Below, one piece after another: positions 3,821 to 52,200 of a stretch of DNA of 64,000 bases. This DNA comes from Thalia democratica. Taxonomy: Eukaryota. The translations under genes and the position numbers were made by a program. The stretch is from assembly GCA_965202585.1 (NCBI GenBank), contig OZ241831.1:4836001-4900000 (forward strand), in the 5' to 3' direction. Position 1 is the stretch's first letter, and each line of letters opens with the position of its first letter. The notes beneath the pieces are model-generated. The model was given only the letters and a program-made list of their open reading frames with translations, searched no databases and had not been told where the DNA came from.

Positions 3821-4250
3821 CTACGGGGGAAATCCCGCGTGCTCGTTTTCACCTTGAATGCGGCGGGCAAGATGGATGTCCTTCTCCATGATGGTCACTC
3901 TATTGGCATGGATGGCGCACAGGTTGGCGTCTTCGAAAAGCGCCACCAAGTGAGCTTCAGCAGCTTCTTGCATGGCCATGACTGCGCTGCTCTGGAAACG
4001 AATGCCCCTGACAAGGTTCAGGTCCTGGGCGACTTCACGAACGTTGGAAGGGCAGTTTGCGGATCAAGAGCTCAGTGGACTTCTGGTAGCGAAGGATTTC
4101 ACGGAGAACCACGGTACCTGGGCGGTAACGGTAGGGTATTTTGACACCTCCAGTGTTTGGTGCCCTCTTGCGGTCTGCCTTGTACGCAAGTTGCTTGCGG
4201 GGAGCTTTTCCCCCAGTTGAAATGCGCGGTTGCTGCTTGGTACAAATCAT
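3821..4250 (-). pseudogene. H3: Divergent histone H3 variant with a frameshift at ~4040 (probable pseudogene)
   Basis: 4250-4041 encodes an H3 N-terminal half through ...[10 protein letters not shown]. After one orphan T (L70-V71 missing, net -5 nt) a second frame gives [72 protein letters not shown], with TAG at 3823-3821. Intronless; no histone stem-loop seen downstream. Confidence 0.9.
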
Positions 4251-6338
4251 TTTTAACTTTAACTAACCTATAATGAAAAATGAAAAACTTTACAATTTTT
4301 TTCAAAAAATAGTTTAATTTTTCTGTAGCAATATTGTAAAATCATGTTAGTAAGTAAATTTATCAAACATGACAGCAGGGTTTTAACTGATTTTTTTTTA
4401 CACCAGAGTTTTCTAAATAGGGCAATACCGCCCCTAATGTACAGTTCTAGCAAAATAATAAATAGAAAAGAATATCTTTTTAAGATATAAACAAGTTAGC
4501 CTTTTTAGTAATTTTTAAGTTTAGGGTATCGAAAGGAATAAAGTTCATTTCCTGAATGAAAGTCCTAAAAATAAAATAAATAAAGTTTCTTAAATGAACA
4601 TCTCTCGATACTTATAGTTGACTTTTCTTGCTTAAAATTAGACTAGCTATTTGAAACTTCTTTGTAAAATAATAGAATAAACAAATATGGAAGTGTTTAA
4701 TAATCAAGTAAAACAATATATGTTAATAAATTCTAATTAATAAAGTTACTACGCTACATGGCTCGCTAGCTTGTTTTAAAGCTTTGAAATTATTAGTTCT
4801 ATTTACTAACTTCAGTGAATTTTTTTTTTAAACAAACATTGTCAGTTAACAAAAAAAAAAATGCTTACCGCTAGAAGCTAGATGAATTACTTACCTTAAA
4901 GCAAAGTTGCAATAACTTTTTTAATTTGTACGCGTATTTCAAATGCGTATGCGATTAGCTAATTGAAATATTAATAAAAAACTATGCCATAAAGAAAAAC
5001 AGCAAACATAAATATACTTAGGGTTACAAAACACTTTCAAGTTTGTTTAAACTTCAAAATCCAATTTATCTGGAAGTTTATTGTTGACCGACCCCGCCAT
5101 TCATAAAAATAATTTTTCTACCAAAGTCATTTGCAGGAAATAGGAAAACTTATAGCTGAACTCCCAGTATATTTTTTCTTGATTTAATTAAATGCAAAGC
5201 ACCGCAGTTCTTTTACAAAACATGAATCTTGGTAATTAAATTACTTACATCTCTTTTTTTAATTTAAATTCATTTTAACTTATAATTTTGACAAAAACAT
5301 AGTTTATACGGTTTGAAAAGCTATAAAAGCTAGTCGAAAAAATTTCAAGTGTCTATTTTCATCAAAAAAAAAAAGCATCTTACACTAAATATAAGTTGAT
5401 AGCAACAATTTTCTTTGTTAAAAGTTGAGTTTTTATGTGTAAACTAAACTAACTAATTCATTATAATTTATTTTTACTTTATAAAACTGAAAATATGCTG
5501 ATTTTAATTATAACTTTGCGGCTTGAACATTACATTAAAACTTGAATAATAAATTAAATATTTAAAAATAAATCTGAATAAATATATCGCATAAATCTCA
5601 AATAGACTGGTTCTTTTTTTCATTTATAACTAGAACTTTGTTTTATTTTTTTGAATGAGATGAATACCCAAGTAGTTTAGAGTTTTTATAGTTCTAGTCT
5701 AAATATAATGAAATTACACTATTTTCTATTAGTCTCTGTCTAGAATCCATCTATAAAATTAAAAACTTTTTAGTATTAACTAATTTAGTATGACTTTGTT
5801 AACAAAATTACACTAAAAGATTGTTAAGTATTATATTATTTTTTTTAAAGTTTAAATTTTTATGCATAAAAACAGTGAAGCATAAATTTAAAAATGTTTA
5901 GTTTACTATAGAAAATAGATATGTACTTTGAAAAGTAGTTAAATTAAAATAAATTGAAAAAACTAGGAAATAGGTTTTTTTCTTTTTTATAGCAACAAAA
6001 GAGCTTTAGTTAAAATACTAAGAGGCTTATTGTTAGAAATTAAAATATTTATTTTTAGTCAAAGCTTTCTACCTTTAAACATGAGCCAAACAAAATAGAC
6101 AAGATTTATAAATAATTTGCAAATTGGTCCAGGATACAAGTCAATTGTTTTTATTAGTAATTTTTTCCCTGCATCAGTAGTTACAAGAAATAAAACAAAA
6201 TAGAAACATTTTAAACCTTTAAAATTCAAGCTGTTGTCTCCATAACAACAAACAGCTTCGAACTTTTCATCAAATTTTCAATTCAAACCGCTTGAATTTT
6301 ATTCGTATTGTAAAAAATTTCAAACAAACTGAACTCCA

Positions 6339-7211
6339 ATGCTAAACTCAAACTTCACACTCACGCCCAACTTCCACAGCGCGATCAGAAACTACACGTA
6401 CGGGCTGGGATGCGGATTCCTGCCCCTGCAGCAGATGACGTTCAACTCCTACAGACTCCCCTACCCCAGCTACCTGCTGGAAAACAACTTTTTGAACAAC
6501 GGACTGGCCGGCTGTTGCGGATACGAGAGACCGGATTATTACCACGATGACTATTACGACTATTACGATCATGGTTACGACCGCAAAAGAGGCGTTTACG
6601 CGAGGAAGCCAAGAAGCCCGACGGCCAACCTGAGGCAGCACGACAACAACAAGAACGTCCGAGTGAAGTTAGACAACAGGAGCAGGAACAAGGACAAGGT
6701 GAACGAGAGCGTGTTCTTCTCGAAGAGAAGCCCCGGAAACCCGGTGAAGGTGAGGTACGCGGAAAACTACAGGGAACCCGAGATCTGCCCGTCGTACGTC
6801 GAGAGGTACAACAAGTCCAACAGGTGGGCGAGAAGGCCCAGGGTCATGCACCCGAAAGACACCGAGGAGTACTCGAGGCCCGGCTACTACTATCTGGAGG
6901 GTGCGGATTTCCCGCGCTTTTACTCCCCGTACTACGACTCTGATTGGTCGGACTCGATCGGGCTGCCGCCGTTTCTCAACAAGCCGAGGAAGCGGAAGAA
7001 AAGGAAGAGAAAGAAGAAGGAAAAGGGAGCGGTTCAGGTGATAATCAACACCAACGTCAACAACGACACAAAACTGATTGATCCGAAGAAGAACAATAAA
7101 ATAAGTAAAATAAGTAAAATTAAAAAGGAAAATAAAGCGGTTTTGAGCAAAGAGCCCCAAGTTTTGACTTATAAAAAAGAGCCTCAAGTTTTGACTTATA
7201 CAATAGATTAA
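6339..7211 (+). CDS. Hypothetical basic Tyr/Asp-rich protein A (290 aa), paralog of the 9427-11387 gene
   Basis: Long ORF with GC3-rich codon usage like that of confirmed exons. Motifs GCC, YYHDDYYDYY, GLPP, a poly-K/R run and AVQVIINTNVN are shared with protein B. The start codon is uncertain; a possible acceptor lies at TTCCACAG near 6379. Confidence 0.7.
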   Translation: MLNSNFTLTPNFHSAIRNYTYGLGCGFLPLQQMTFNSYRLPYPSYLLENNFLNNGLAGCCGYERPDYYHDDYYDYYDHGYDRKRGVYARKPRSPTANLRQHDNNKNVRVKLDNRSRNKDKVNESVFFSKRSPGNPVKVRYAENYREPEICPSYVERYNKSNRWARRPRVMHPKDTEEYSRPGYYYLEGADFPRFYSPYYDSDWSDSIGLPPFLNKPRKRKKRKRKKKEKGAVQVIINTNVNNDTKLIDPKKNNKISKISKIKKENKAVLSKEPQVLTYKKEPQVLTYTID

Positions 7212-8973
7212 ATGATGATCAGAATGCTTCTAGTAGAGTTGTTTAACTATAACAATGCTGAGAGGAATGTAAACTTTGCTAAGAAAAATTTGAAGAATAA
7301 TAGAAAAAAAGGTTTTTGAAAAAGCTAACAACTTTATTAAACTATAAAATGGTCAAGCTAGAAACAAAGTCTAAAGAATCTTACTTCAAAAGATTAATGA
7401 TAACACACAGAATAAAAACAAACGATTAATGGATGGAAATTGTTACAGATGCGTAAAGTAACAAAGACTAATTGAACTAGAAGTATTTACTTGGAAAATA
7501 TTTAAATTATATTTTTTAATTTTATTCACTTTATAAAACAAAAACATTTTAAATAAGTTTAGTTTAAGACTAGACAGTGTCTTTAAGAAATAAATTGTTT
7601 AGTCTAACTTTGGTATTTTTAAAAGTATTTGTTAACAAAATCTATAAACCTAGTTTAAATGATGCAATGTAAATATTTGTATTTAAGTATTTCTGAATTT
7701 ATCAAATAGATTAAATAGCTATAATGTATTATTTCAATCATTATCCATGTTTAAGGTGTTTTATAACAGAATATAATTAGTTTTAAACAAATATTGTTCT
7801 TTCTAAAGCCTGAAACGACTCTTGAAAGAATTGTATGTAAATCAACAGAAAGTTGCTATTAAGAAGGAACATACTTGAATTTGTAGGATGTGTATTTAAC
7901 ACTGAGCCATGTTTTCATTTAATCAAACTTCAAATTTTGAACTAAAGAATAAGAGTATGTTAAATAAAAAACTCAGTATTAACACTTTATCTACTTACTG
8001 AAGAATAGCTCCTGTTTAAAGATAGTTTAGTTTGTTTACAAATAAAAATATATTAAAAGACATACAAATTTATATACCAAATAAAGGTAACAATCTAGAT
8101 ACAAAGCTGTATGAAAATAGATGTTAAGGTAATTATTACTTAACAAGGAAAGTGAAAACTGTTAAAGAACCTTATTAAAGTACTTAAGTTTTATTTCTGT
8201 AAGTTTTGTTAGGTACGTGGTTTTTAAAACTAAACAACTTAAAGGTACAGCTTTGTTTTTTTATGAGAAAACTCCTTGTCCGTAATACGCAATACAACTT
8301 ATATTTTGTTAACTGTTTTTACTACTAAGCTAAAAGTTTTATTAATCATTAACTTCAGTTCTAGTGCCCAATGACACTATTTAGAAACGTTAGTTAAATA
8401 GTAGTTATATAGTAAGATAAAATATTGAAATAAAAACATAAAGTGAACATTTTAAAACTTCTCGGTTACCTCAGTTTACTTCAATTGTAAATGAGCTTAC
8501 TTTGTTAAAAAAACTATTAAGCTGAGAATTAGATACATGGTTGTAAAAGTAACCGAAATAGAAAAAAAAATTATAAAGATTAAAACAAAATAAGATGTAC
8601 ATTTACAAGAGATAAAATGGTTACAACAAAAAATTGTCGCTTTGTTTTTTTTAAGTAACACTTTTATCAATTTGTTATTTAAGTTTGATTAGACTCAACA
8701 TGACCTCGGTATTACATCTTTAGAGTGAAAATTCAATTATAAATGTTTTTTAGCAATAAGTTACAGGTTTTTAAAACAGCTTATTATTTAAAAAACAATA
8801 ACTTTTAAAGTGTTTTTGGAAAAAAAATATACATAACTATTTCTTTTCGCTTTAAATAGCTAGAAGAAAGTAAAAATAATAAAATACAGTTTCCTACTTT
8901 TTCTAGTTTCCGTTTTTAAAGTTTGTGGATTTCATGGGTTGTAAAAAGTTATTTGTAAAAGAAACGCTTAGGT

Positions 8974-9242
8974 CAGGGGTCGGCAAACTGCAATCTACGG
9001 GCATGCACATTTGGCCTGCGAAAAAAAATTAATAAAACTAACACTTCCTACTGACTATATAATCTGAAGTATGAAAAGAAGAGCAAAAAAAGAACGAATA
9101 TAAAATTTACGGAAAATACAAAATTTACAACAGGTATTTTAAGTCTGCTATGAAGAGTGAATACTAAAGCTACAACTACGGTCCGCGAACATTTCTATTT
9201 TTTAAATTTTCCCCGTGCCCACCAAACACCTGCCGAACCCTA
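8974..9242. mobile_element. Non-autonomous hAT-family MITE with 8-bp target-site duplication
   Basis: Left TIR CAGGGGTCGGCA at 8974; right TIR reverse complement TAGGGTTCGGCA ending at 9242 (10/12 match). Flanks GCTTAGGT (8966-8973) and GCTTAGTT (9243-9250) match 7/8. CAGGGG-type ends and 8-bp TSDs are typical of hAT. Confidence 0.8.
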
Positions 9243-9426
9243 GCTTAGTTTACGACTTTGCAAGAATCATAAAACGTTAATTTTTTTACGAAAGCAAACA
9301 AAAAGTTTTTAAGCTATTTCTTTAATTCTTGAAAAGTTTCATAAGAGTTGCCATAGAAACTCATGAATATTTTATTCTAGTTTTAAATATTAATTTATTT
9401 TAAAAAACAATCTGCACAGCAGCAAA

Positions 9427-11387
9427 ATGGATCCGAACTCGCTCGTGAAGGCGGTGGTAGCCAGCGGGTGTTGCAACAAGCACGGCAACGGTAACAACTG
9501 CGGGACTGTCCCCCAGTACGTGAGCACGTCAGCGATGCCACCCATCAACAACTACATGTACCCGCAGCAGATGATGCCGCCCCAGATGATGATGCCCCAG
9601 CAGTTCCAGTACCCCATGTTCGTGCCCATGCCGATGCCCGTGTACCAGGACGGCGGTTGTCACGGCGGCGGGTGTCACCACTGCCACCACGGGCACCACC
9701 ACCACCACAGGCCGCCGTGGAGCCACTACTACGACGACTACTACGACTACGGGCTTCCCCCTCCGATGAGAGAGAGGAGGCGGCGAAGGAGGAGACGGAA
9801 GAGGGACAACGACGCGGTTCAGGTTTTTTTTTAATTATTACTGATCTTTTTATTATCAATATTTTTAAAGTTTTTCCAATTCGAGAGTTCGTTCATAAAA
9901 CAACGATTCTATCAGTAAGTCAATGAGATCAAAGGGAAGAATTATTGAAATGATAAGTTTGTATTTATTTCCTTGGATTCAAGTCGAGAACTATTATTGT
10001 TGCTCTTACAAGTGTAAAACAGTAACTTTACTTTAACTTTTCAATGTTAAATAAGGCTCTTACAATAAGTATATTACAGTAATTAGTAATTTTCACTGTT
10101 AAATCTTTATAAAACTCAATTTTAGACTAACCAAAAATATTTTTAGTTAGTCAGTTAGAATAATGAGATAAAACTCTCATTTAAATGGAAATAACTCGTG
10201 AATTAATTAACTTGTATTTATTATCTTGGATTCAAGTCAAGAACTACGACCGTTGGTTTAACAATAAGTGTAAAACAGTAATTTTATTTTAATTTTTCAA
10301 GGTTGTCCTGGACACGCACGTTAACGCGGACGAGCTGGTCCACCTGCCGGAGGAGACGGCCGTGTTCACCGGGTGTGACCGCATCAAAGTGGCGGACATG
10401 ACGAAGAAGGCGGAGGTGAAGGGGGGCGGCAAGGGCGGAAAGAAAGTGAAGGGGAAGGAGGATGAGCAGAAGAACAAGCACGTGATCCAGATCGAGTCGG
10501 TGGAGGAGCTGGACTACTTCAGCGACGCGCTCAGCCACCTCACCCGGATCACGGAGTACGACGAGGGGGGCGACGACAAGAAGGGCAAGGGAAAGGGCGG
10601 TCACGGGCACGGACACGGGAAGCACGGGAAGAAAGGGCACGGCAAGAAGGGTCACGGGAAAAAGGGGCACGGAAAGCACGGGAAGAAGAAGCACGGTAAG
10701 AAGGGCCACGGCAAGAAAAAGCACGGAAAGAAGAAGGGACACCACCACCCGAGCCACGGACCGTGCATGAGCGATGAAGAGTCGTTAAGCGAAGATTCGT
10801 TGAGCGACAGTTTGAACATTTTCAGACCGAACAACAGTTTTTCCAATCTGAGAAGCGGAGGATCTTTGACTTGGAGGGGCAATCCCCAGATTGGTAACAA
10901 GGTCAATCCTCCGAAATCCGCTGATGACCTGCTGCCCAGAAACCTGTTGAAAGTTTCAAAGGAACAACTTTTGTATACTGATGACGATAGATATTTTTCT
11001 AATCATTTGAACACAAACAGAAACAGAGCTAAACATTTTTGCAAACATACAAAACCAGATAAAGGTTTAAAAAATTCTGATAGAAGTCCCAAACAAAAAG
11101 TTACTGCTGGCTGCAACACTGTTTACAATGAACAAGAAGATCCCAACAACTCGGATAAACTCGTTTTTAAGCGCGGTAACCATCTGAAGTCTAGTCAGGG
11201 AGCTTTTAGACAAAAACAAAGACATTGTAGAAAGAATCTAAATGAAACTAGTGTTATTGAGTTGGGGAATAGACTACAAAGTTTGACATGGAACAACAAA
11301 GAAGAAAACAGTAAAAACAAAAGTATCCAGCAAGTTATCAGCAAAGACATTAAGCTGCTTAAGAATCAGCTTAAGTCGAAAAAATGA
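9427..11387 (+). CDS. Hypothetical two-exon basic His/Gly/Lys-rich protein B (~493 aa)
   Basis: Exons 9427-9822 and 10302-11387, with a phase-0 intron CAG|GTTTTT...TTCAAG|GTT. The splice joins ...RKRDNDAVQ|VVLDTHVNAD..., which aligns with the uninterrupted GAVQVIINTNVNND of protein A. GC3-rich. Regions: P/M/Q-rich, Cys/His-rich, YYDDYYDY, Arg run and a (G/K)HGKK repeat. Confidence 0.75.
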
Positions 11388-12331
11388 AATGTTATTTTTA
11401 CTTGAGATTCACTAAAACCAGGTTTTTAGTTATACAAACATACAATAACAATCTTGTAAATAATTGTTTTTTAATAATAATTAAAACCACTTTGTTTTAG
11501 TTTTTAAATAATTTAAATCTTGACATTGTTTTAATATAACCACATTTTATATTGACTGACACAACGGTTTTTGGTAACTTTGTCTGCCTGAGCCCTAATG
11601 CCTGAGCCCAGGTCACAGAGTGTCACGTGAAATGTTGTTGTAGTTTACTTTTAATTTTATCACTGAAGAAATAAGTCATACTATAATTTGAACAGTTAAT
11701 AATACATTTATAAACAGACGTAGTCGAATAAACGTACATAATAAAATATTTAAAAGATTATTATCATAATGTTCACAAGTTATAAATACAAATTAAGCAT
11801 AAGTTAACTTAAGAAAATATTTATTTAAAACAAGGTTATGGTTTCATTACAGTTATGCAATTAAAATTATGAGCTACAACGGTTTGAAACTTGCTTATTA
11901 CGTCTTAAATCTAAATACAACTTTTTAAAACCGTTTTAGTTTGCTGTCTTTACAAATACAATTTAGTTTAATGAAAGTGTACAAATGCTTTATGTGAAAC
12001 ATCAGTATTTAAAAAAGCTGAATAAACGATTTTAAATTTAGTTCATATAATAAGTTGCTTTTCAGCTCACAGTTATAAAAGTAAAAAAAAAATCAAAATC
12101 ATAAAAGTTGTTTTTTTTCTACCACAAAAAATAAAGTACTTTAAAAAAATATTAAATCAGATACTAAAAAGTTGAAGTCAGTCAGTTTAAAAATAACAAT
12201 AAAAGGAGCTTCAGCTTTCCTTTAAAATGTTTTGCTTTTCAATTTAAATCGTATCTTAAAAGCACTTTTCATAATTGCACAAAGCTATTGTTAAATGGAA
12301 GTGATTAGAAAGATGTTTCGAATATAAATTT

Positions 12332-15300
12332 TTAAGCGTCCAATTGTTTTTCAGATAAAATCATGCAAATGATGATGTATCCCTGATCCGTCCTGATGAA
12401 GAGCCTCCCGTCGTACTCCGAGAGACCCACTACGGGAGCGTAGACGTACATGGATGCTATTTCCTTTCCTTTAATAAAAATATCATTAAACTCTTTTGAG
12501 TTTTTTGTAACTCTTTTTTTACAGTATACAACATTTTTTCAATAACTTTTGTAGATGTTACTTTAAAGGTCCTAAGACATAAAGTGATTGCTTCTAATAT
12601 TAATATATCTAAGAGTTTTTAGTTTAAATACAAAAATTGATAAATGTTGAAAACAAGCCTGTTTCAGTTTCGTACACTTTAATGTTTCTTTCGTGAGATC
12701 CGATTATGACGTATTTGTTGTCTCTGCTAAACACGGCGCTGGACACTTTTGAGTTTAGCAAGGTGTTCGAAACTATTTCCTTGTAGAAAACACATTCATC
12801 TCCCTAAAGTAAAACTCATATTAATGTTTCAAAACATATTTTTCTTTTAAACTCATTTCGCAAAACTTGTTTTTTTGGTGAACAACATTTTACTTATTAC
12901 AACAGATCAAGTGTACATTGAAATGTTTAAGCATTAAAATCATTTTTTACCGTTAAACTTTTTAGCCAGAACCTTAAAACGTACGAACATTTAGAAAATA
13001 ACACAAAGTATAACACAAAGTATAGCAAACCTTGTACAATTAACTTATAAGGTTGAACAAAATACTGTAAGAACTTAAATTTATTTTTTAGATTATTTAT
13101 TTAGAATGAACATAGTTTGTATAATTAGTAAATTTTATTTGGTGAATAAAGCTTGTTTGAACATGAGAAAAAGCAGAAAGTGTTAAAAAATCTTTAAATA
13201 TTTTACCCTTAAAATTGAGTTTTTAAAACAACTTTGAATTATGGAAAAAAGGAATAAAAGCACAAGGTTCAGTTTTTGTTTCAGGTTATTTAAGTTTTAG
13301 CTATAAGACCTAATAGTTTTTATTTTTTAAGATTACGGTAGAACAAATAACTTTGCTAAAGGTTATAAAACAAAACAGCAAACAAAGTTTCAGTATATCT
13401 ATATAAAAATTCTTAGGTAAACTTATTCAAAGAGTATTAGTTGAAAATCTTTAATAAAACACCCCTGATTAATAAACTCAGTTAAGTTAGATTGTTGTAA
13501 ACTAAAAAAGTTAAGCTGATATTTAACTTTATAATACTTTTTATTTGAAAGTGTTTTAAGTTTTATCATTCAGAACAATCATCCAGATTTTCTTTATATT
13601 TTGAGATTAAAAAACATTTCAAAATTTTCAAGATTTTATTTTATATTTAATAACCCAAATTAAACATATTGAAAAAATAACAGCAAACCATTTCAATACA
13701 GTATGACTTGTTAGTTTGTTAGATATAAAACTTTGGAAACTTTGGAAAGAGCTAAAGTTTAACTTTATTTCAAAACAACAACTAAGTGGTAATTTTAGTT
13801 TCATACGTTACACCACATTATAATATTACACAAAGAAAAATGGGTATTAACTCTTGAACTTTTCTTGTTTCAAAATCATCCATACATTAACACGCAAACC
13901 ACACACAAACACGTCGACCCTGAAAAAGAATCAAACAAGTTCAAAAGATGAAAAACAAACTTCTCTCCTCCACAGTGTCCTCGAGTTCCCGGTCGACCCG
14001 GACAGCAGAAAGTTGCGGTCGAAGCTCAGAGCGAGGCGGGAGACCGAGCAGGAGCGGCCCTTCAGCTTGTCGTGCCGCGCGATCGAACACGCTTCCTTCC
14101 CGAACGCCAGCGAGAACAGGTGGACGTCGCCGTTGTCCGACCCCAGAAACACGTTCAGCGCGCCCCGGTCCGAAAACGCGCACGCCTCCGTCTGGCGCCC
14201 CTCGAACCCGAAACCCTCGAGGGCGGACAGGAACTCCACTTTGAACGTCCTCGCGTCGATGACGGTCAGCGAGTTTACGTCGCTCGCGTCTCTCAAGTTC
14301 ACCACCAGGTATTTTTCCTCGGCGTCCAAGCACGCGCTGTTCACGAACGTCGCGTCGTCCGCGATGAAGTTTGCGTCTTTTTTCTGCACCAAAAGCTTTT
14401 TGTCGCTCGTCAACGGCGTCATGGTGATGCGGCCGTTTCTGAACGCGCAGTAGACTTTCTCGCCGCGCTCGGAAAACCTGACCATGACCGGAACGTTGTC
14501 TTTCTTCTTTCGCTTGGCGTTCGATGTTTTGTCGAAGGGTATGGAGTGCAAAACTTCGAGATTAGGGTATTTTGAAACGTCGTAAACCGTCAAATTTACG
14601 GCTTGTTTGTTGAATATGGCAATTTTGCTGCCACATTTACTCATGTCGTGGTTTTCTCTGGTCAGCCTGAGGTTTTTTTTGCTCATCTGCGGCAAAAAGG
14701 CGTTTTGGTCGACAACTTGGTGTTCGTCTAGTTGCCACACTTTTAGGTAAAACACCTAAAGTAGAAAAAAAAATACGATAAATCAACAATACTACACATA
14801 AAGGCTACAAAAAAATTTTAAGTGATAAACACATATTAAGTTATTTTTAAATTTTCTGATAAACATTTCTTTTAAAATGGGGTCAAAACGTACTTTCTTT
14901 GACCCGGTGACAAAAGTCCTACCGTCCACGGGCACGATGAAGTCGACCGAGGCGCCCATGCCCGCTATGACGTCACAATCACCTTCCTGCGAGAAACGAC
15001 CTTCGCTCGATCGGAAGCTCACAACGGAAATTGTTTTGTCCTCACTGCCAACCACCAGCGTCACTTTGCTTTCATCTTGCTGCGGCAGCCACTTCAAGCA
15101 AGTGACGGCTTCTTCGTGCTGGTAGTGGCTTGAAATTTGCTGGAAATAAAAAGTTTTCTATACACAAACTTATTTTCTGATGAAGTTTTTAAATTGCTTG
15201 GTATAAAACAAAAAAAAATACAATGAACTCCAATGATTTGTACTCATTAATCTATTGTAATTAATCACCTGAATGCTCTATATTTAAAAAGACAAAAATA

Positions 15301-42100: not shown

Positions 42101-45100
42101 GTTTTAGTATATCTATTATACTGTTATTAAATTCGTTTTTATTATTTGTCTGGAAGAAAATGTATAAAATAGTTGTTAAATTAGTTTACACATTCCAAAG
42201 TTTTTACCTTACTAATTTTATAATTTTGCAAACTATTTTACGTATTTTGAAAACTTTTATATCATGAAAAAGTTGAACTTATAAAACATTTTTTATAAAC
42301 TAGTTTGAACGGAATGATTTGTTAACATAAAAACTAACATAATAATCAACTGCAAAACTTAAAAAAAAGTTTTCACAAGCTTCATACTTTTATATCAAAA
42401 AAAAATATGTTTCAGCTTTTAAAAATCTACAAGACTCACAAAATTACTACCCAACTCTAAAGTATGAATTTTTGACAACAACAATATTAATGTTTCAAAA
42501 AAAAACAAAATTTTAACAAACATTGTATTAACAGCAAAGGAAGCACGAGCTTGCCACTTCGATCCAGTCTGTTTACAAAGGTTACGTCACAAGGGTAAAG
42601 TATCAGAAAATGAGGGCAGCAGTGACCGTCATAAGCGCCCACTGGAGGCGAGTGCTGGCCATCAGGTTGAAAGCGAGGCGCAAAAAAGCCGCCCTCGACA
42701 TCAGAAAGTAAATTCATATTTTGCACGCTTTTATTTAGTAAAGTACTGTTAAATAAGTTAAAGGTTTACAAATAAAACATTTTGCTAAAAATTTATGACA
42801 CAAAAATTTTAATTTTACGCTGGATAAACTTTTATAGAAGTTAAAGTCAATCTGAAAAACGTTGACCAAAGTATTTTCATCAACTTAAATATATAAGGTT
42901 AACAAAAAGTAAACTTTCTTGAATTTAATTTTCAGGTTCATAGTCGGCTTCCAGCACCGCAACCAACCGAGGTCGGAGTTGAACGCGCAATTTCTCGATT
43001 TCGTTCGATTCAAGTATTTGAACAGGTGCAGGGAAGTCCTGCCGACCAGTGTCCTCGATAAATCGTGGCCACAGGCGCCCCCATCGTTGGAAGAAGTGAG
43101 TTGACTTTAAATTATGAAAATTATGCAAAATTTAACATCTCTGTACTATATTGTATTTATTATTTTATCGAATTTTTATACAAGTTTTTTTTAATACTGT
43201 GTTTTTTTAAGTTTGTACTTATTACAAATAAAAGCTTTTTTAACTGTCAGAACTGTTTTCTTATCAAAATGCTTTCAAAAGTTAATAGCTGCTCGTTTTT
43301 CGTTTGCAGAAAAAGAACATTAAGGTTTAAATTTTTGTTGTCATCGTAAACAACCTTTACAAGCGTAAACTTTTTGTAAACAAAAATTTTAACGTTTCAA
43401 TTTTAAATAACCTTTTATTTTGATCTTTAGATACAAATAGTATAATACTTTTAATAAATAACTTTTAATAAACTGGCAATATAAATTATTTCAGACCAAG
43501 AGCCTACTGATGAATCTCAACATGAAAAACCTCACGTTGAAATACGTGAAAAAAATGACCGCCAAGAAAAAGTTCGAGATGGAAGAGAAGTTCACCGCCA
43601 GCCAGATATTCAAGGGAAGGAAGGAAAGCTACGAAAGCTCCGTTTCAAAACCCTTCATGAGCGGTTCCGGTAGGAAGATGCTGAATGCTGTTTAAACATT
43701 AACTTGTGTTTTTTTCATTTCAAGCTCGAGTATATTACGACACACCCATGCGCGATGCGTGCAAACAATTCGCGCTCCTTTTATGGAAACTTTTTCTTAT
43801 TTTTTTAAAAACGTAAACACGTGTGCGCGTTGCTTGAAATTTGTGCTAAGCAGCTAATTATTTTTTTTTCTGCGTAACTTTTTTATTTTTTAGAAAGTAA
43901 CTTACGACTTTTTTTTTACTTAACAAACTTATTTTGATGCTTTTTTTTAACTAGTAATTACGCGCATATTTTTTAAGTTTCTCATATAAAGCTAATTTAA
44001 TGCTATCTTATCATCATATCACAGTCAGTGAGAAAGTTCTCTTTTTTCTAAATCACTAAAACCACTTTTCTGTCTGCGCAGACAAATTAGTCGACGGCAG
44101 GCAGATCGCTTCTCTGCTCAACGGAGAAAAGCCTTCATACGCGTGCCTCGTCACCAAGTACGACCGACACGGCTACAAGGAGCGCGAGCGCACCCTAGCG
44201 GTGACGAAATCCGCCACCTATTTGTTCGATTCCAAAGCCAACAAAGTGAAGGACCACATTCCGCACTCCGAACTAACTGGCGTTTCGTGCAGTAACTTGA
44301 GCGACAATTTGTTCGTCCTGCACCGGAACTTCGACAATGAGGACAAGAACAGCAAAGGTGACGTCATAGTTGCGAGCACGATGTGCATCGAGAGCATCAC
44401 GAAGGTTGCCATGGAAGCGAATGCGGTGGAGAAAGTCAAGATAATTTCGAACAATGACAGGTAAGAAAACCAATGTTGTAATAGTTTTGTTTGTTATTGC
44501 TTGTTTTTTAATTCAACCAGTTTAATTCAACCAGTTAAATGCCAGTAACAATTTTTGCATTCATGAAATTTTTTTAATTTTTTCAGACCAATGTTTTTGA
44601 TAATTTTTTTAATTTTTATTTCCATGTACAGAATCGTTCACAAAGTGGACAGCAGTAAAGACGGTCAAATTGAATTCGCCCATGGACCTGTTTCCAGCAT
44701 TAAAAAGGCGAAAAACGGAAACCTTTTAGTGGTATGTACTTTTAAGTATTAATTTTTTTGGTTAACTCTTTTTACTTGAAACAGTTAACTTATTAGACAT
44801 TTAAAGAAAACTTCTTATTTTCTTCGTGTAATTATGGCAGTAACTATTATAATATTTATTTTATATGTTTCGCTTTTTTTTTTATAAGTTACACTTTTAA
44901 TTGATTTTCTACGTTTAATTTTAACGTTGAGAAAGTTAAACATTGAAAATTTTTACGTTGTGGTGATAAAACATCGTAAACTTTGTTTTTGAAAACCAAA
45001 ACAGTCAAACGCAAGTAATAAAAAACTTAAGGCACGCCTTATTTTGTACTTGTTTTATACTAGTTAAAATTTATGTTAAAAGTTTATGTTAAAATGTTTG

Positions 45101-49200: not shown

Positions 49201-52200
49201 TCTGAAAATATAAAAGTATTACTTTTTAGATTAATATTCTCGCGAAATCTTAACAACAAAATTTTCATTTAAAGCATGTTTTTTTTTTAGTTTTTTAATT
49301 TCTAGCAAATTGTTTCACTTTGCTTACTTTACACTTGAGAACTTTAAAAAAACAATAAGAATTAGTTTTTTATGTGTTTTCTATTTCTTATCATTTTCAT
49401 TTTCTGTAAAACAAAATCTAATGATACAATTGGTAAAGTCGGTATAAGTGTTAACTGTGAAACGTTTTATTATTGTCGTCTTTACATGATGTAAAACCAT
49501 TTACTATATATTATTAATGTTATTATAAAGTGATATTTATGAAATTTTAATACTTTTCTTTATTTCTACAACTACTTAATTTTAACATTCAAAGCCAGTT
49601 CAAAGCCACAAAAATGTTTACTGCTGCCTCTTTAGTAAACACACCGATAAGCCTTCCTTACAAAGTTAAGGAGAAAAAACACCAATATTGGAACTTTAAA
49701 CTGCTGATAAAATATTTGCGGTTGTTTTTTACCACAATATCCAAAACAATGTATTGCATAAAAATTTGTATAAACTGTATTAAACTTTGTCAATGAGGTA
49801 TGTGAATGCTTATAAAAAAATCCTTTTATAAGTATACATGTTGCAATATCTCAGTTGTTTTAAATATACTCAATGCAGAACAACTGTTTTAATGAAAAGT
49901 ATTTTCAACCTTTGATACCAGACCATTTGTTCAATATTGCGCATTTAATTCTTTATACAAACAAAATTTCCAACAATCTTGAAAAAACAGTATAAAAGTG
50001 TAAGAAACTCTTCTTAAGTAAAGTAATTGCTTCTTGGTCTAATAATAATACTTTTCTACAATAGTTTTATTTAAGACAAATACTCAAGTTCTGTTTCGAA
50101 AGAAACATATAATTTTTTACCTTATAAAAACTGTGCTCAGTATGTTTTCAAATAAAAAATTCACTGTGCATAAAAGTATTTTAAAAAATTGTATACTGTA
50201 AAAAAACGACATTATGGTTTGATAGATATAAAAATATTTTGTCTTGTTAAAGAGTAAACATAAACATAGAACAAATTTTGAGCATAATAAAACCCTAAAA
50301 GTCATTTTTTTGTTAATCAATCAATTCAATTAGCACAATAAAAAAGTATTGTGCACAAACATAAAATTTGGGAACCACAGCTTTAATGCATACTTAAAGC
50401 TTTTCTGGTAGTTTTTTAAAAACACAACTGAAATTAGACCAACAAAACAGTATAAAAAAAGATCTTAAAACATTAGTTTTAAAATCCATATAAGAAAGTT
50501 TTTATAAGTACAACACTTCTTTTTGACATATTTTTAACTTTCTTAAGCTATTCTTTTATGTTTTTTAATTGTAAGCTAGTTTAAAAATAACAACTTTTTT
50601 TAAATATACATGCTACACTTATTATTTAAAAAAAAATGCTAATAAAAAGTTAAAAAGTTTTAACTGCTATTTATTTACATATCACACAAAAAAAAAACAT
50701 TGTATTGTTTTTAGAATAACAAGGAATCTATCTATTTTTCCAAAAACTTTCTTTTAAAAAAATTAAAGCTCCTATGGCTTTCAATACAGTCAAGAACGCA
50801 AATTTTATAGGCCTAAAAAACTAGATTTTACAAACTGTATTCTTTCCTCACAAAAACGTAACTTAATAAAGTATTATGTTGTATTTATACCAAATATAAT
50901 TAAACAAAAGAAAATTTTGGCGAAATTCTATAAGAACTAAGCCTGCATTTATTTGTGCGTGGGCTCAAGTAAACAAAAATGTTTGATCATACCTTTATAT
51001 TAAAATTTAAATGTTAGTTTTAATACTGTTACTGTTTTCAACTTGATTTCGATGCATTTTTGAACAACTTAGTTTTCAAAGTTTTTTTGTTAGTGTGCAT
51101 TATGTATATACCGCATTGATTTTAAACAATTTTACTTAAACCTTCCTAAAAGACTAAAGATATCTATAAAATGGTTTTAGTCTTTTAGATTGTGTAGAGC
51201 ATTCATTAAAATAAATAAAAAATATTTAGTAATTACTTGAGTTTAAACACTGCTTGTTAATAATTTTAGACGTGAATTTTTTCAGTAGTTTTTTGTCACA
51301 AGCCAATTTTGTGACTCTCAATAACTTATAGTGAACTCTTTAAAAAAGTATCTAAAAAATTTTACAGTAATCTTTTTATAGTTGAAGGAAACATTAACAT
51401 TCTACACTAAACTAATTTTTCAAGGACTTATAAATGTAATGTTATTCTCTTCAACATAGGTATTTATTTACTTTGATTATTTTTATTTAATACATTTTAA
51501 CTGTTTTGCAAAGATATTTTGTAAAAAGTTAATTATCTGAATAAACATGTTTAACACATATAAGAAATTTTTAACATAAAAAATTATGAAGCATTTTTTC
51601 TAGGTTAATAATTAATTTGTGACAAATATTCTTAATTCAATTTTAGTTGATTAAAAATTTGACTTAAAATTTTCTTATGGTTCAGCAGTTAACAAAATAA
51701 AATAATTTAATTAATGTTCCTCTTTTTAAGATACGAAAAAAGTTTCATCGAAGAGATTTGTTTTAAACCTTATTTTTAGGCCAACAGTTTTTCGGTTAAT
51801 GTCTAGAAAATAAATTTTTGCATATTTCTTTTAGAAACTGAGTATCTCTAAAACAAACATTAAGATTTTTTTATAAAAGCGTAAATTTAAAAATATTTTT
51901 AGTACACATAAGTTCAAATCTAAAACTGTCGTAGACTATAACCGAGTTATTTAACAAAGCCTATTATTACTTGATAGTCAAAACTTTTTTACCCAAAACA
52001 TTTGTGAATACATATTTGTTACAACTCAATCAATGAAGCAATGTAGTAAAACATATTACTGTGTCCATTAACTTTCCTTTGAAAAAGTCAAAAGACATAC
52101 GTAAAAGTGTACATATTTTTGATGTACTTAATGTAATAAAACCCGTTTGAGCTCTTAAAACTGTACACCGTTCGTAAAAATATACATACCACAAAAATTT

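Follow-up and report, generated by a model that had tools for sequence, protein, structure and literature searches.

A narrowly distributed family of two proteins in Thalia democratica, defined by one short conserved module

The window analysed here, a 64,000-nucleotide stretch of the Thalia democratica genome (assembly GCA_965202585.1, contig OZ241831.1, forward-strand positions 4,836,001–4,900,000; coordinates below count from its first letter), carries two adjacent genes, here called A and B. A and B are real protein-coding genes and constitute a genuine, new family of two proteins with a narrow distribution, whose defining feature is one short, strongly conserved module. Judged from their sequences, the two proteins share one homologous module of ~50–60 residues and are different chains elsewhere. 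A first-pass annotation, made from the letters of the window, had presented them as a tandem, lineage-specific pair in which selection keeps an ordered motif running from GCC through YYDDYYDY and GLPP to AVQV and T-x-VN-x-D. The motif strings that it quoted are present in the DNA; its view of the motif as a selected unit is supported for the AVQV strand and not supported for GCC, YYDDYYDY and GLPP as uniformly selected elements.

Relatives were recovered from just two other marine organisms, in agreement with the lineage-specific family first proposed. With both proteins as queries, a word-indexed search covering 5.8 billion protein clusters returned one relative per gene, P0001 (224 aa; 47–54 % identity) for A and P0002 (527 aa) for B. 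HMMER, run exhaustively over 1.84 billion representatives for the B family only, added P0003, which represents exon 1 of a close relative, and one His-Gly-Lys low-complexity match. All three relatives lie on short marine-metagenome contigs, two of which belong to the Tara Oceans project PRJEB4352. The two organisms are termed R1 (contig L010) and R2 (contigs L001 and L002, assigned to one organism because they overlap over 692 bp at 99.4 % identity). L010 is ~93 % identical to B exon 1 at the DNA level, with in-frame indels. In R2, an AT-rich 5′ flank is followed by an intronless B, a 90-bp spacer, A and an AATAAA signal. The linkage of A and B is thus kept in R2, in the order B→A and with no intervening AATAAA; the window has A→B, with 2.2 kb separating the two. 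The R2 arrangement may represent a two-gene operon, with a local rearrangement between the lineages. A and B are each single copy in the 801-Mb genome. No relative turned up in a scan of IMG/VR, a result that argues against a viral origin, nor in two scans of JGI metagenomes. These searches support a family that would be restricted to a narrow marine animal lineage. A check of the taxon by marker families found no arthropod cuticle protein, no plant-type cellulose synthase and no GH6, and a single weak, broken match to GT2. Elsewhere in the window, a WD40-like exon (13931–14755, minus strand, 274 codons) has only one relative among the 5.8 billion clusters (89 % identical, on a Tara Oceans contig); the lineage is therefore poorly sampled, and 'orphan' status has to be read against that sampling.

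Homology of the module is carried by profile comparisons. Aligning A plus its ortholog with B plus its ortholog in hhalign gave a probability of 92 % and an E value of 6e-7, pairing residues 196–250 of A with residues 99–149 of B, and a second match paired residues 57–75 of A with the stretch before the YYDDYYDY of B (E value 5e-4). Composition-adjusted BLASTP with the spliced B returned E values of 0.006 (A against B) and 0.001 (A against P0002); default BLASTP was not significant when A was set against only exon 1 of B, which ends at AVQ. A genome-wide search for the motif, as the first-pass annotation had proposed, matched these two genes and nothing else: a module profile that left out B and combined P0002, A and P0001, run in six frames against the assembly, matched B exon 1 at an E value of 1.3e-6, its sole match in the whole genome, and a degenerate DNA pattern for the strand matched solely in A (7029–7057). 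For the N-terminal half of the module, residues 58–72 of A (CCGYERPDYYHDDYY) and 100–114 of P0002 (CCSHRRPRSYYEDYY) align through GCC-x3-RP-x-YY-x-DYY with a score of 59, which was reached by none of 1000 global and none of 1000 block-wise composition-preserving shuffles; the counterpart of A 57–75 in the B ortholog reads GCCSHRRPRSYYEDYY. The best ungapped 15-mer between A and B itself has a p value of about 0.04 under block shuffles. In each pairwise family alignment, the conservation of 15-residue windows peaks at AVQV (13/15 in the A family, 15/15 in the B family), and in B this window sits within the protein's longest invariant run, of 19 residues. The homology of the module, together with this top conservation, indicates that A and B are partial paralogs and that the strand is under selection.

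The order of elements within the module can now be given as a Tyr/Asp patch of the form (GCC/His)-x3-RP-x-YY-x-DYYD, an optional GLPP, a run of 8–14 Arg/Lys residues and the invariant strand, whose consensus is AVQV-(V/I)(L/I)-(D/N)-T-(H/N)-V-(N/C)-(A/N)-D. This differs in several places from what was first drawn. The AGCC of A had been paired with the N-terminal SGCC of B; it corresponds instead to the Cys/His patch that precedes RP-x-YY, a patch in which R2 retains GCC, and the VVASGCC of B is a separate feature conserved within the B family. GLPP and GCC are not fixed elements, as both are absent from P0001. The linkers had been described as completely diverged; B in fact has no linker between YYDDYYDY and GLPP, and a degenerate copy in A (FYSPYYDSDWSD) adjoins GLPP and aligns to B. 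The N-terminal half of the module accordingly occurs twice in A, at residues 57–75 and as the degenerate copy at 180–206, and the ~105 residues between the two copies hold conserved islands of their own (e.g. RYNKSNRW and MHPKDTE). An internal duplication of the whole module in A and a second strand in B (HVIQIESVEELD) were also considered and were not established (hhalign E values 0.08, 0.007 and 0.8).

YYDDYYDY, first listed as part of the shared motif, is in part a matter of composition. It is encoded by 100 %-identical tandem DNA repeats of 9 nt in A (6549–6568) and 12 nt in B (9725–9747) with different codons, and the Lys/Arg runs of both genes are also repetitive in DNA. R1 lacks exactly one 12-nt unit of the YYDDYYDY repeat of B, and its Arg run is broken. 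On account of these repeats, the missing unit and the broken run, the Tyr/Asp and basic blocks are best regarded as composition-type elements of drifting length. The suspicion that the whole match might be low-complexity similarity is therefore borne out for YYDDYYDY and the basic runs, and not for the non-repetitive strand and GCC-x3-RP.

Base composition and substitution patterns support the coding status of both genes. The surrounding DNA is AT-rich (22–30 % GC), and sharp GC islands coincide with the open reading frames (ORFs). GC content at third codon positions (GC3) is 0.72 in A, 0.88 in B exon 1 and 0.60 in B exon 2, and 0.31–0.36 in the orthologs of the relative; within both A and B, GC content drops from 5′ to 3′. 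No GC-rich island fit to be an upstream coding exon was seen between A/B and the neighbouring genes. Between the window and R2, the proportions of differing non-synonymous (pN) and synonymous (pS) sites are 0.29 and 0.92 for A and 0.25 and 0.82 for B; pN thus lies far below a saturated pS, indicating long-term purifying selection on both ORFs. Against R1, exon 1 has a ratio of non-synonymous to synonymous substitution rates (dN/dS) of ~0.69 and four in-frame indels, so the N-terminal low-complexity half of B evolves fast.

Gene B is spliced, as the first-pass annotation had proposed, with a junction at 9822/10302 (Table 1). This is confirmed by the intronless ortholog P0002 (contig L001), which reads DNDAVQVVLDTHVNADEL without interruption across the position of the junction; L010 has its donor at the same position and a shorter intron of ~170 bp. 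The spliced product has 493 residues. Exon 1 encodes, in order, VVASGCC, a P/Q/M/Y-rich stretch, the Cys/His patch, RP-YYDDYYDY, GLPPP, the Arg run and AVQ, and exon 2 also carries an acidic Ser-rich patch. P0002 carries the His-Gly-Lys repeat at about residues 175–215 and 270–300, which includes an extra block lying earlier in the protein, so both the copy number and the position of these blocks vary. At the C-terminus of A, KEPQVLTY is encoded twice, and it is single copy in P0001. Downstream of the B stop codon, a probable 3′ untranslated region (UTR) still aligns with R2 despite the saturation of synonymous sites; this conserved stretch showed no significant RNA fold (z-score 0.59).

Table 1. 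Features of genes A and B in the window
Feature	Position	Strand	Description
A X-box-like element	6236–6249	+	GTCTCCATAACAAC; exact GTHNYYATRRNAAC match, 90–103 bp upstream of A ATG
Gene A	6339–7211	+	Single-exon ORF, 290 aa + stop; isoelectric point (pI) 9.7, grand average of hydropathy (GRAVY) -1.16
A first copy of N-terminal half of module	6507–6563	+	Residues 57–75, AGCC-x3-RP-x-YYHDDYYDY
A shared module	6924–7088	+	Residues 196–250: YYDSDWSD, GLPP, Lys/Arg run, AVQVIINTNVNND
A Lys/Arg run	6987–7025	+	Residues 217–229
A conserved strand	7029–7067	+	AVQVIINTNVNND; in the most conserved window of the A family
A C-terminal 27-nt tandem duplication	7149–7207	+	KEPQVLTY encoded twice; Tandem Repeats Finder 2.2 copies, 90 % matches
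B X-box-like element	9347–9360	both	GTTGCCATAGAAAC; 67–80 bp upstream of B ATG
Gene B exon 1	9427–9822	+	132 codons, last residues AVQ
B Arg run	9769–9804	+	Residues 115–126
B AVQ at end of exon 1	9814–9822	+	
Gene B intron	9823–10301	+	479 bp, GT at 9823, AG at 10300–10301, phase 0, 24 % GC
Gene B exon 2	10302–11387	+	361 codons + stop, opens VVLDTHVNAD
B exon 2 start	10302–10337	+	VVLDTHVNADEL
B His-Gly-Lys repeat	10614–10733	+	15/39/54-nt tandem array
B conserved C-terminal helix	about 11304–11384	+	AlphaFold2 helix at ortholog residues 506–525
Stretch after B stop, probable 3′ UTR	11388–11455	+	Aligns with L002 432–500 (~65 bases)

No known domain was found in either protein, again as first stated. 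A and the exons of B had no match in Pfam-A at E≤1, and the orthologs gave only sub-threshold hits, the best being FXR_C1 (PF16096) on residues 128–153 of P0002 (13–14 bits against a 28-bit cut-off, E value 0.056–0.15), where an Arg run is followed by DAV; the FXR_C1 model searched against the Thalia genome itself did not match the locus. The module profile found nothing among PDB sequences, and searches of the ESM Atlas with A and the B ortholog gave no usable match. The two chains combine high hydrophilicity (GRAVY about -1.2) with a basic charge (pI 9.7). By hydropathy, no N-terminal hydrophobic core or membrane segment was found in A, B or the orthologs (best 19-residue Kyte–Doolittle mean 0.3–0.72), upholding the earlier remark that no obvious signal peptide is seen. 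That the proteins are basic and intrinsically disordered holds for the charge; disorder is consistent with the data, though weakly, given that AlphaFold2 returned a low mean predicted local distance difference test (pLDDT) score of 38 for the B ortholog and 34 for A on very shallow alignments of 2–3 rows. The sole moderately confident element was the C-terminal helix of B.

Upstream of both genes lie elements resembling the X-box, for which the DAF-19/RFX consensus is GTHNYY AT RRNAAC (bioRxiv 10.1101/2020.08.21.260547). Searching with the X-box pattern GTHNYYATRRNAAC gave three sites in the window, that is, 4 strand hits against 0.72 expected; the third (50498–50511) is AT-rich and probably due to chance. 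In a three-species alignment upstream of B, the sole long invariant block, GTTGC(C/T)ATAGAAACT, fits the X-box consensus; the element is present in both L010 and L001, and the start context of B is conserved in the three species. Genome-wide, the B-type pattern GTTGCYATRGNAAC gave 497 strand hits against 10 for the reversed pattern used as a control, an excess of about 50-fold, and the RFX DNA-binding domain (PF02257) has at least 23 matches in the assembly, mostly in tandem arrays with open frames and far above the handful that animals usually have. Examples lie at C1:89.55–89.73 Mb, C1:23.04–23.45 Mb and C6:70.90–71.26 Mb. Many of the genomic X-box sites stand in regularly spaced arrays of their own (e.g. 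C1:20.29–20.50 Mb, C1:29.7–30.9 Mb and C1:90.2–90.8 Mb), and the window itself holds near-matches of the B type, GTTGCCATGGAAGC and GTTGCTATAAAAAA, at 44405–44418 (plus strand) and 5983–5996 (minus strand). In a sample of 20 genomic X-box sites, no readable neighbouring first exons were found.

A and B are probably co-regulated by the RFX family through these elements. As in DAF-19/RFX target promoters, each gene has a 14-bp consensus match within ~100 bp of its ATG, and that of B is kept in the relatives; in contrast to them, the ciliary genes tested in this genome lack an X-box and the RFX family is greatly expanded, so the meaning of the regulon may differ. The R2 copy of A (L002) has no X-box of its own and follows B after the 90-bp spacer described above, spacing that would fit co-transcription of the two genes. 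An alignment of the A upstream region with the R2 spacer was not convincing. A poly-T tract followed by CAG, 10–70 bp upstream of ATGs, was also noticed, both in the window (9400–9420) and upstream of CFAP20 (L032, about 1180–1200). Such tracts resemble 3′ splice acceptors and would fit 5′ UTR introns or trans-splicing, which could explain why the promoters of some genes do not adjoin the ATG.

Taken together, we consider the chances about even that A and B are disordered basic proteins, confined to one lineage and regulated together, whose polybasic run serves targeting and stands beside a docking strand. In this reading, where the proteins localise, which partner they dock to, the binding of RFX and the expression of the genes are inferred. 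A and B would be intracellular, and their chains outside the module, basic and very hydrophilic, are probably disordered. A Lys/Arg run of at least six residues, the classical criterion for a polybasic nuclear or nucleolar signal, is found in A (217–229), B (115–126) and both orthologs, and basic runs of such length serve nuclear and nucleolar targeting and polyanion binding; the run of A and B may do the same, a role towards which the FXR likeness described below also points. The adjoining AVQV strand would be a short linear docking motif that binds its partner by beta-strand addition, and the Tyr/Asp patch and basic run would act as repeat-prone 'sticker' blocks of drifting length. Both genes are probably co-regulated through an RFX-type X-box about 70–100 bp upstream of each ATG.

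For such a strand, the nearest precedents would be sites of the dynein light chain LC8 that belong to the GIQVD class, together with SUMO-interacting motifs. LC8 (DYNLL) recognises the motif classes (K/R)XTQT and GIQVD, which bind as a beta-strand within disordered regions (PMC2700376, PMC6607443). Like LC8 sites, the strand of A and B is short, lies in a basic, probably disordered context and has a central Gln flanked by beta-branched residues; the anchor triplet [T/I/V]-Q-[T/V] is present as V-Q-V in A, B and both orthologs. LC8 clients themselves are typically disordered and dimerised next to helices. Unlike LC8 sites, A and B have V/I rather than D at position +2 and A rather than G at position -2, and their conservation runs ~10 residues further downstream. 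A SUMO-interacting motif has a core of psi-x-psi-psi or psi-psi-x-psi with an acidic or phosphorylatable flank; B would fit with its flanks (DND-AVQVVL-D) and A, which has no acidic flanks, by the core only (VQVII), in both cases beside a basic run of nuclear type. Cores of this kind often arise by chance, and the motif is too short for statistics. The C-terminal Arg-run region of FXR1/FXR2 offers a further parallel, as the Arg run of the B family is likewise followed by acidic residues and D-A-V. The FXR Arg run has been described as a nucleolar targeting signal. This is likeness rather than membership, with the B ortholog below the cut-off and A unmatched. Compared with orphan charged disordered proteins in general, A and B share the absence of homologs outside a narrow clade, fast evolution through in-frame indels in repeats, low predicted structure and tandem paralogs; they differ in keeping one near-invariant island of 13–19 residues and a common promoter element, which points to a defined interaction rather than to bulk composition.

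Several results weigh against this reading. The module of R1 is altered: in L010 the Tyr/Asp patch is shortened, the Arg run is broken to RRRGGEGRKGDKD and the strand itself is changed (AVQ followed by INDTNLSEE), the start of exon 2 reading INDTNLSEETDSEM instead of VVLDTHVNADEL (L010 460–683). Unless the L010 sequence is a diverging paralog that this assembly lacks, exon 2 evolves very fast and the constraint on the strand is not absolute. AlphaFold2 predicted no strand at the AVQV motif, around which pLDDT is <50, although this low confidence may merely reflect alignments of 2–3 rows, and a complex prediction for the module regions of the two R2 proteins scored 0.00, which gives no verdict and is evidence neither way. 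The ~10 conserved residues past any 8-residue LC8 site or 4-residue SUMO-interacting core exceed what either precedent would account for. On the promoter side, the match between the X-box of B in the window and in R2, taken alone (14/16), was reached by 44/300 shuffles (p about 0.15) and is not significant. No X-box with at most one mismatch was found upstream of B9D2, MKS1, IFT20, CLUAP1 or CFAP20 (~550 bp searched for MKS1, 600 bp for B9D2 and IFT20, and ~1.3–1.5 kb for CFAP20 and CLUAP1), except for one AT-rich one-mismatch site at -250 of IFT20. With these five core ciliary genes devoid of a proximal X-box, the element is not readable as a ciliary label in this genome. Finally, the sequencing-run index held two runs from one study, containing 93 % and 69 % of the words, and no RNA runs; since intergenic words are also present, the two runs are DNA, probably from the source sample.

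Could the pair be an artefact? That one or both ORFs are non-functional, as pseudogenes or chance ORFs, we regard as next to negligible. The index held no RNA runs for the organism and the structural models are low-complexity and of low confidence, as non-genes would have it, but a relative with saturated synonymous sites retains the ORFs of 290 and 493 codons, the splice site is conserved and GC3 of 0.60–0.88 is confined to the ORFs. It is hardly more credible that the likeness is merely compositional, between unrelated low-complexity proteins with Tyr/Asp repeats and basic runs. The tandem repeats behind YYDDYYDY and the basic runs, the non-significant default BLASTP and the marginal A–B 15-mer fit this explanation; it is largely refuted by the non-repetitive AVQV..T.VN.D and GCC-x3-RP found in the same order in both proteins, by the hhalign and B-free profile E values with no other match in 801 Mb, by the shuffles that never reached a score of 59 and by the adjacency of A and B in two species.

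Other explanations accept the family and assign it a different role. Fast-evolving germline chromatin or nucleolar proteins, e.g. spermatid basic proteins whose polybasic run binds nucleic acid and whose remainder drives condensation, are in our view an unlikely identity. The strong basicity with Arg/Lys runs of 8–14 residues, the rapid exon 1 evolution with indels noted above, the sub-threshold likeness to the FXR Arg-run region and a histone H3-like ORF (3821–4250) adjoining the tandem pair would suit them, and RFX2 controls spermiogenesis genes in mammals; however, protamine-like proteins have a pI far above 9.7, conservation extends to large acidic, His-rich and helical parts and the H3-like ORF is reported to be frameshifted. 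It is likewise rather improbable that A and B are RFX-driven proteins of cilia or sperm flagella, basic, disordered and associated with microtubules or dynein, with a VQV strand that would bind LC8 or tubulin. The X-boxes do lie as far from both ATGs as is classical for the element, the VQV core agrees with GIQVD-type LC8 sites, the conserved N-terminal Cys-Cys pair of B could be acylated and the strand resembles the tau hexapeptide repeats VQIINK/VQIVYK, which bind tubulin. Set against this are the five ciliary genes without a proximal X-box, an expanded RFX family (at least 23 domain matches) and widespread X-boxes, by which RFX control need not mean cilia, and the absence of any Pfam match to tau or microtubule-associated protein repeats. 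Precursors of secreted or structural material, sulfated on Tyr and cleaved by convertases at the basic run or forming a metal-binding His-rich matrix, are a poorer fit still and quite improbable: although the acidic Tyr clusters resemble sulfation sites, the KR/RR runs resemble convertase sites and the His/Cys and His-Gly-Lys repeats would bind metals, A, B and the orthologs all lack a hydrophobic N-terminal segment, the upstream DNA shows no GC-rich exon from which a signal peptide could come and the start context is conserved in three species.

The reading that we retain is thus the co-regulated, disordered basic pair with a targeting run beside a docking strand. A more specific version of it, which we think improbable as it stands, would make the module an undescribed bipartite unit of polybasic run and extended GIQVD-like strand that recruits LC8 or another hub protein into a structure or condensate of ciliated or germ cells, one specific to the lineage and under RFX control, with B and A of R2 forming an operon under one X-box promoter.

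Taken alone, the finding is modest, as disordered proteins of orphan genes are no rarity in marine lineages that evolve fast. A and B nonetheless provide a clean case of a taxonomically restricted pair in which selection preserves a short linear motif rather than a fold, and the island of 13–19 residues is a concrete handle for finding the partner. They also link orphan genes to an X-box element in a genome with expanded X-boxes and RFX genes, and could help to explain the targets of that expansion.

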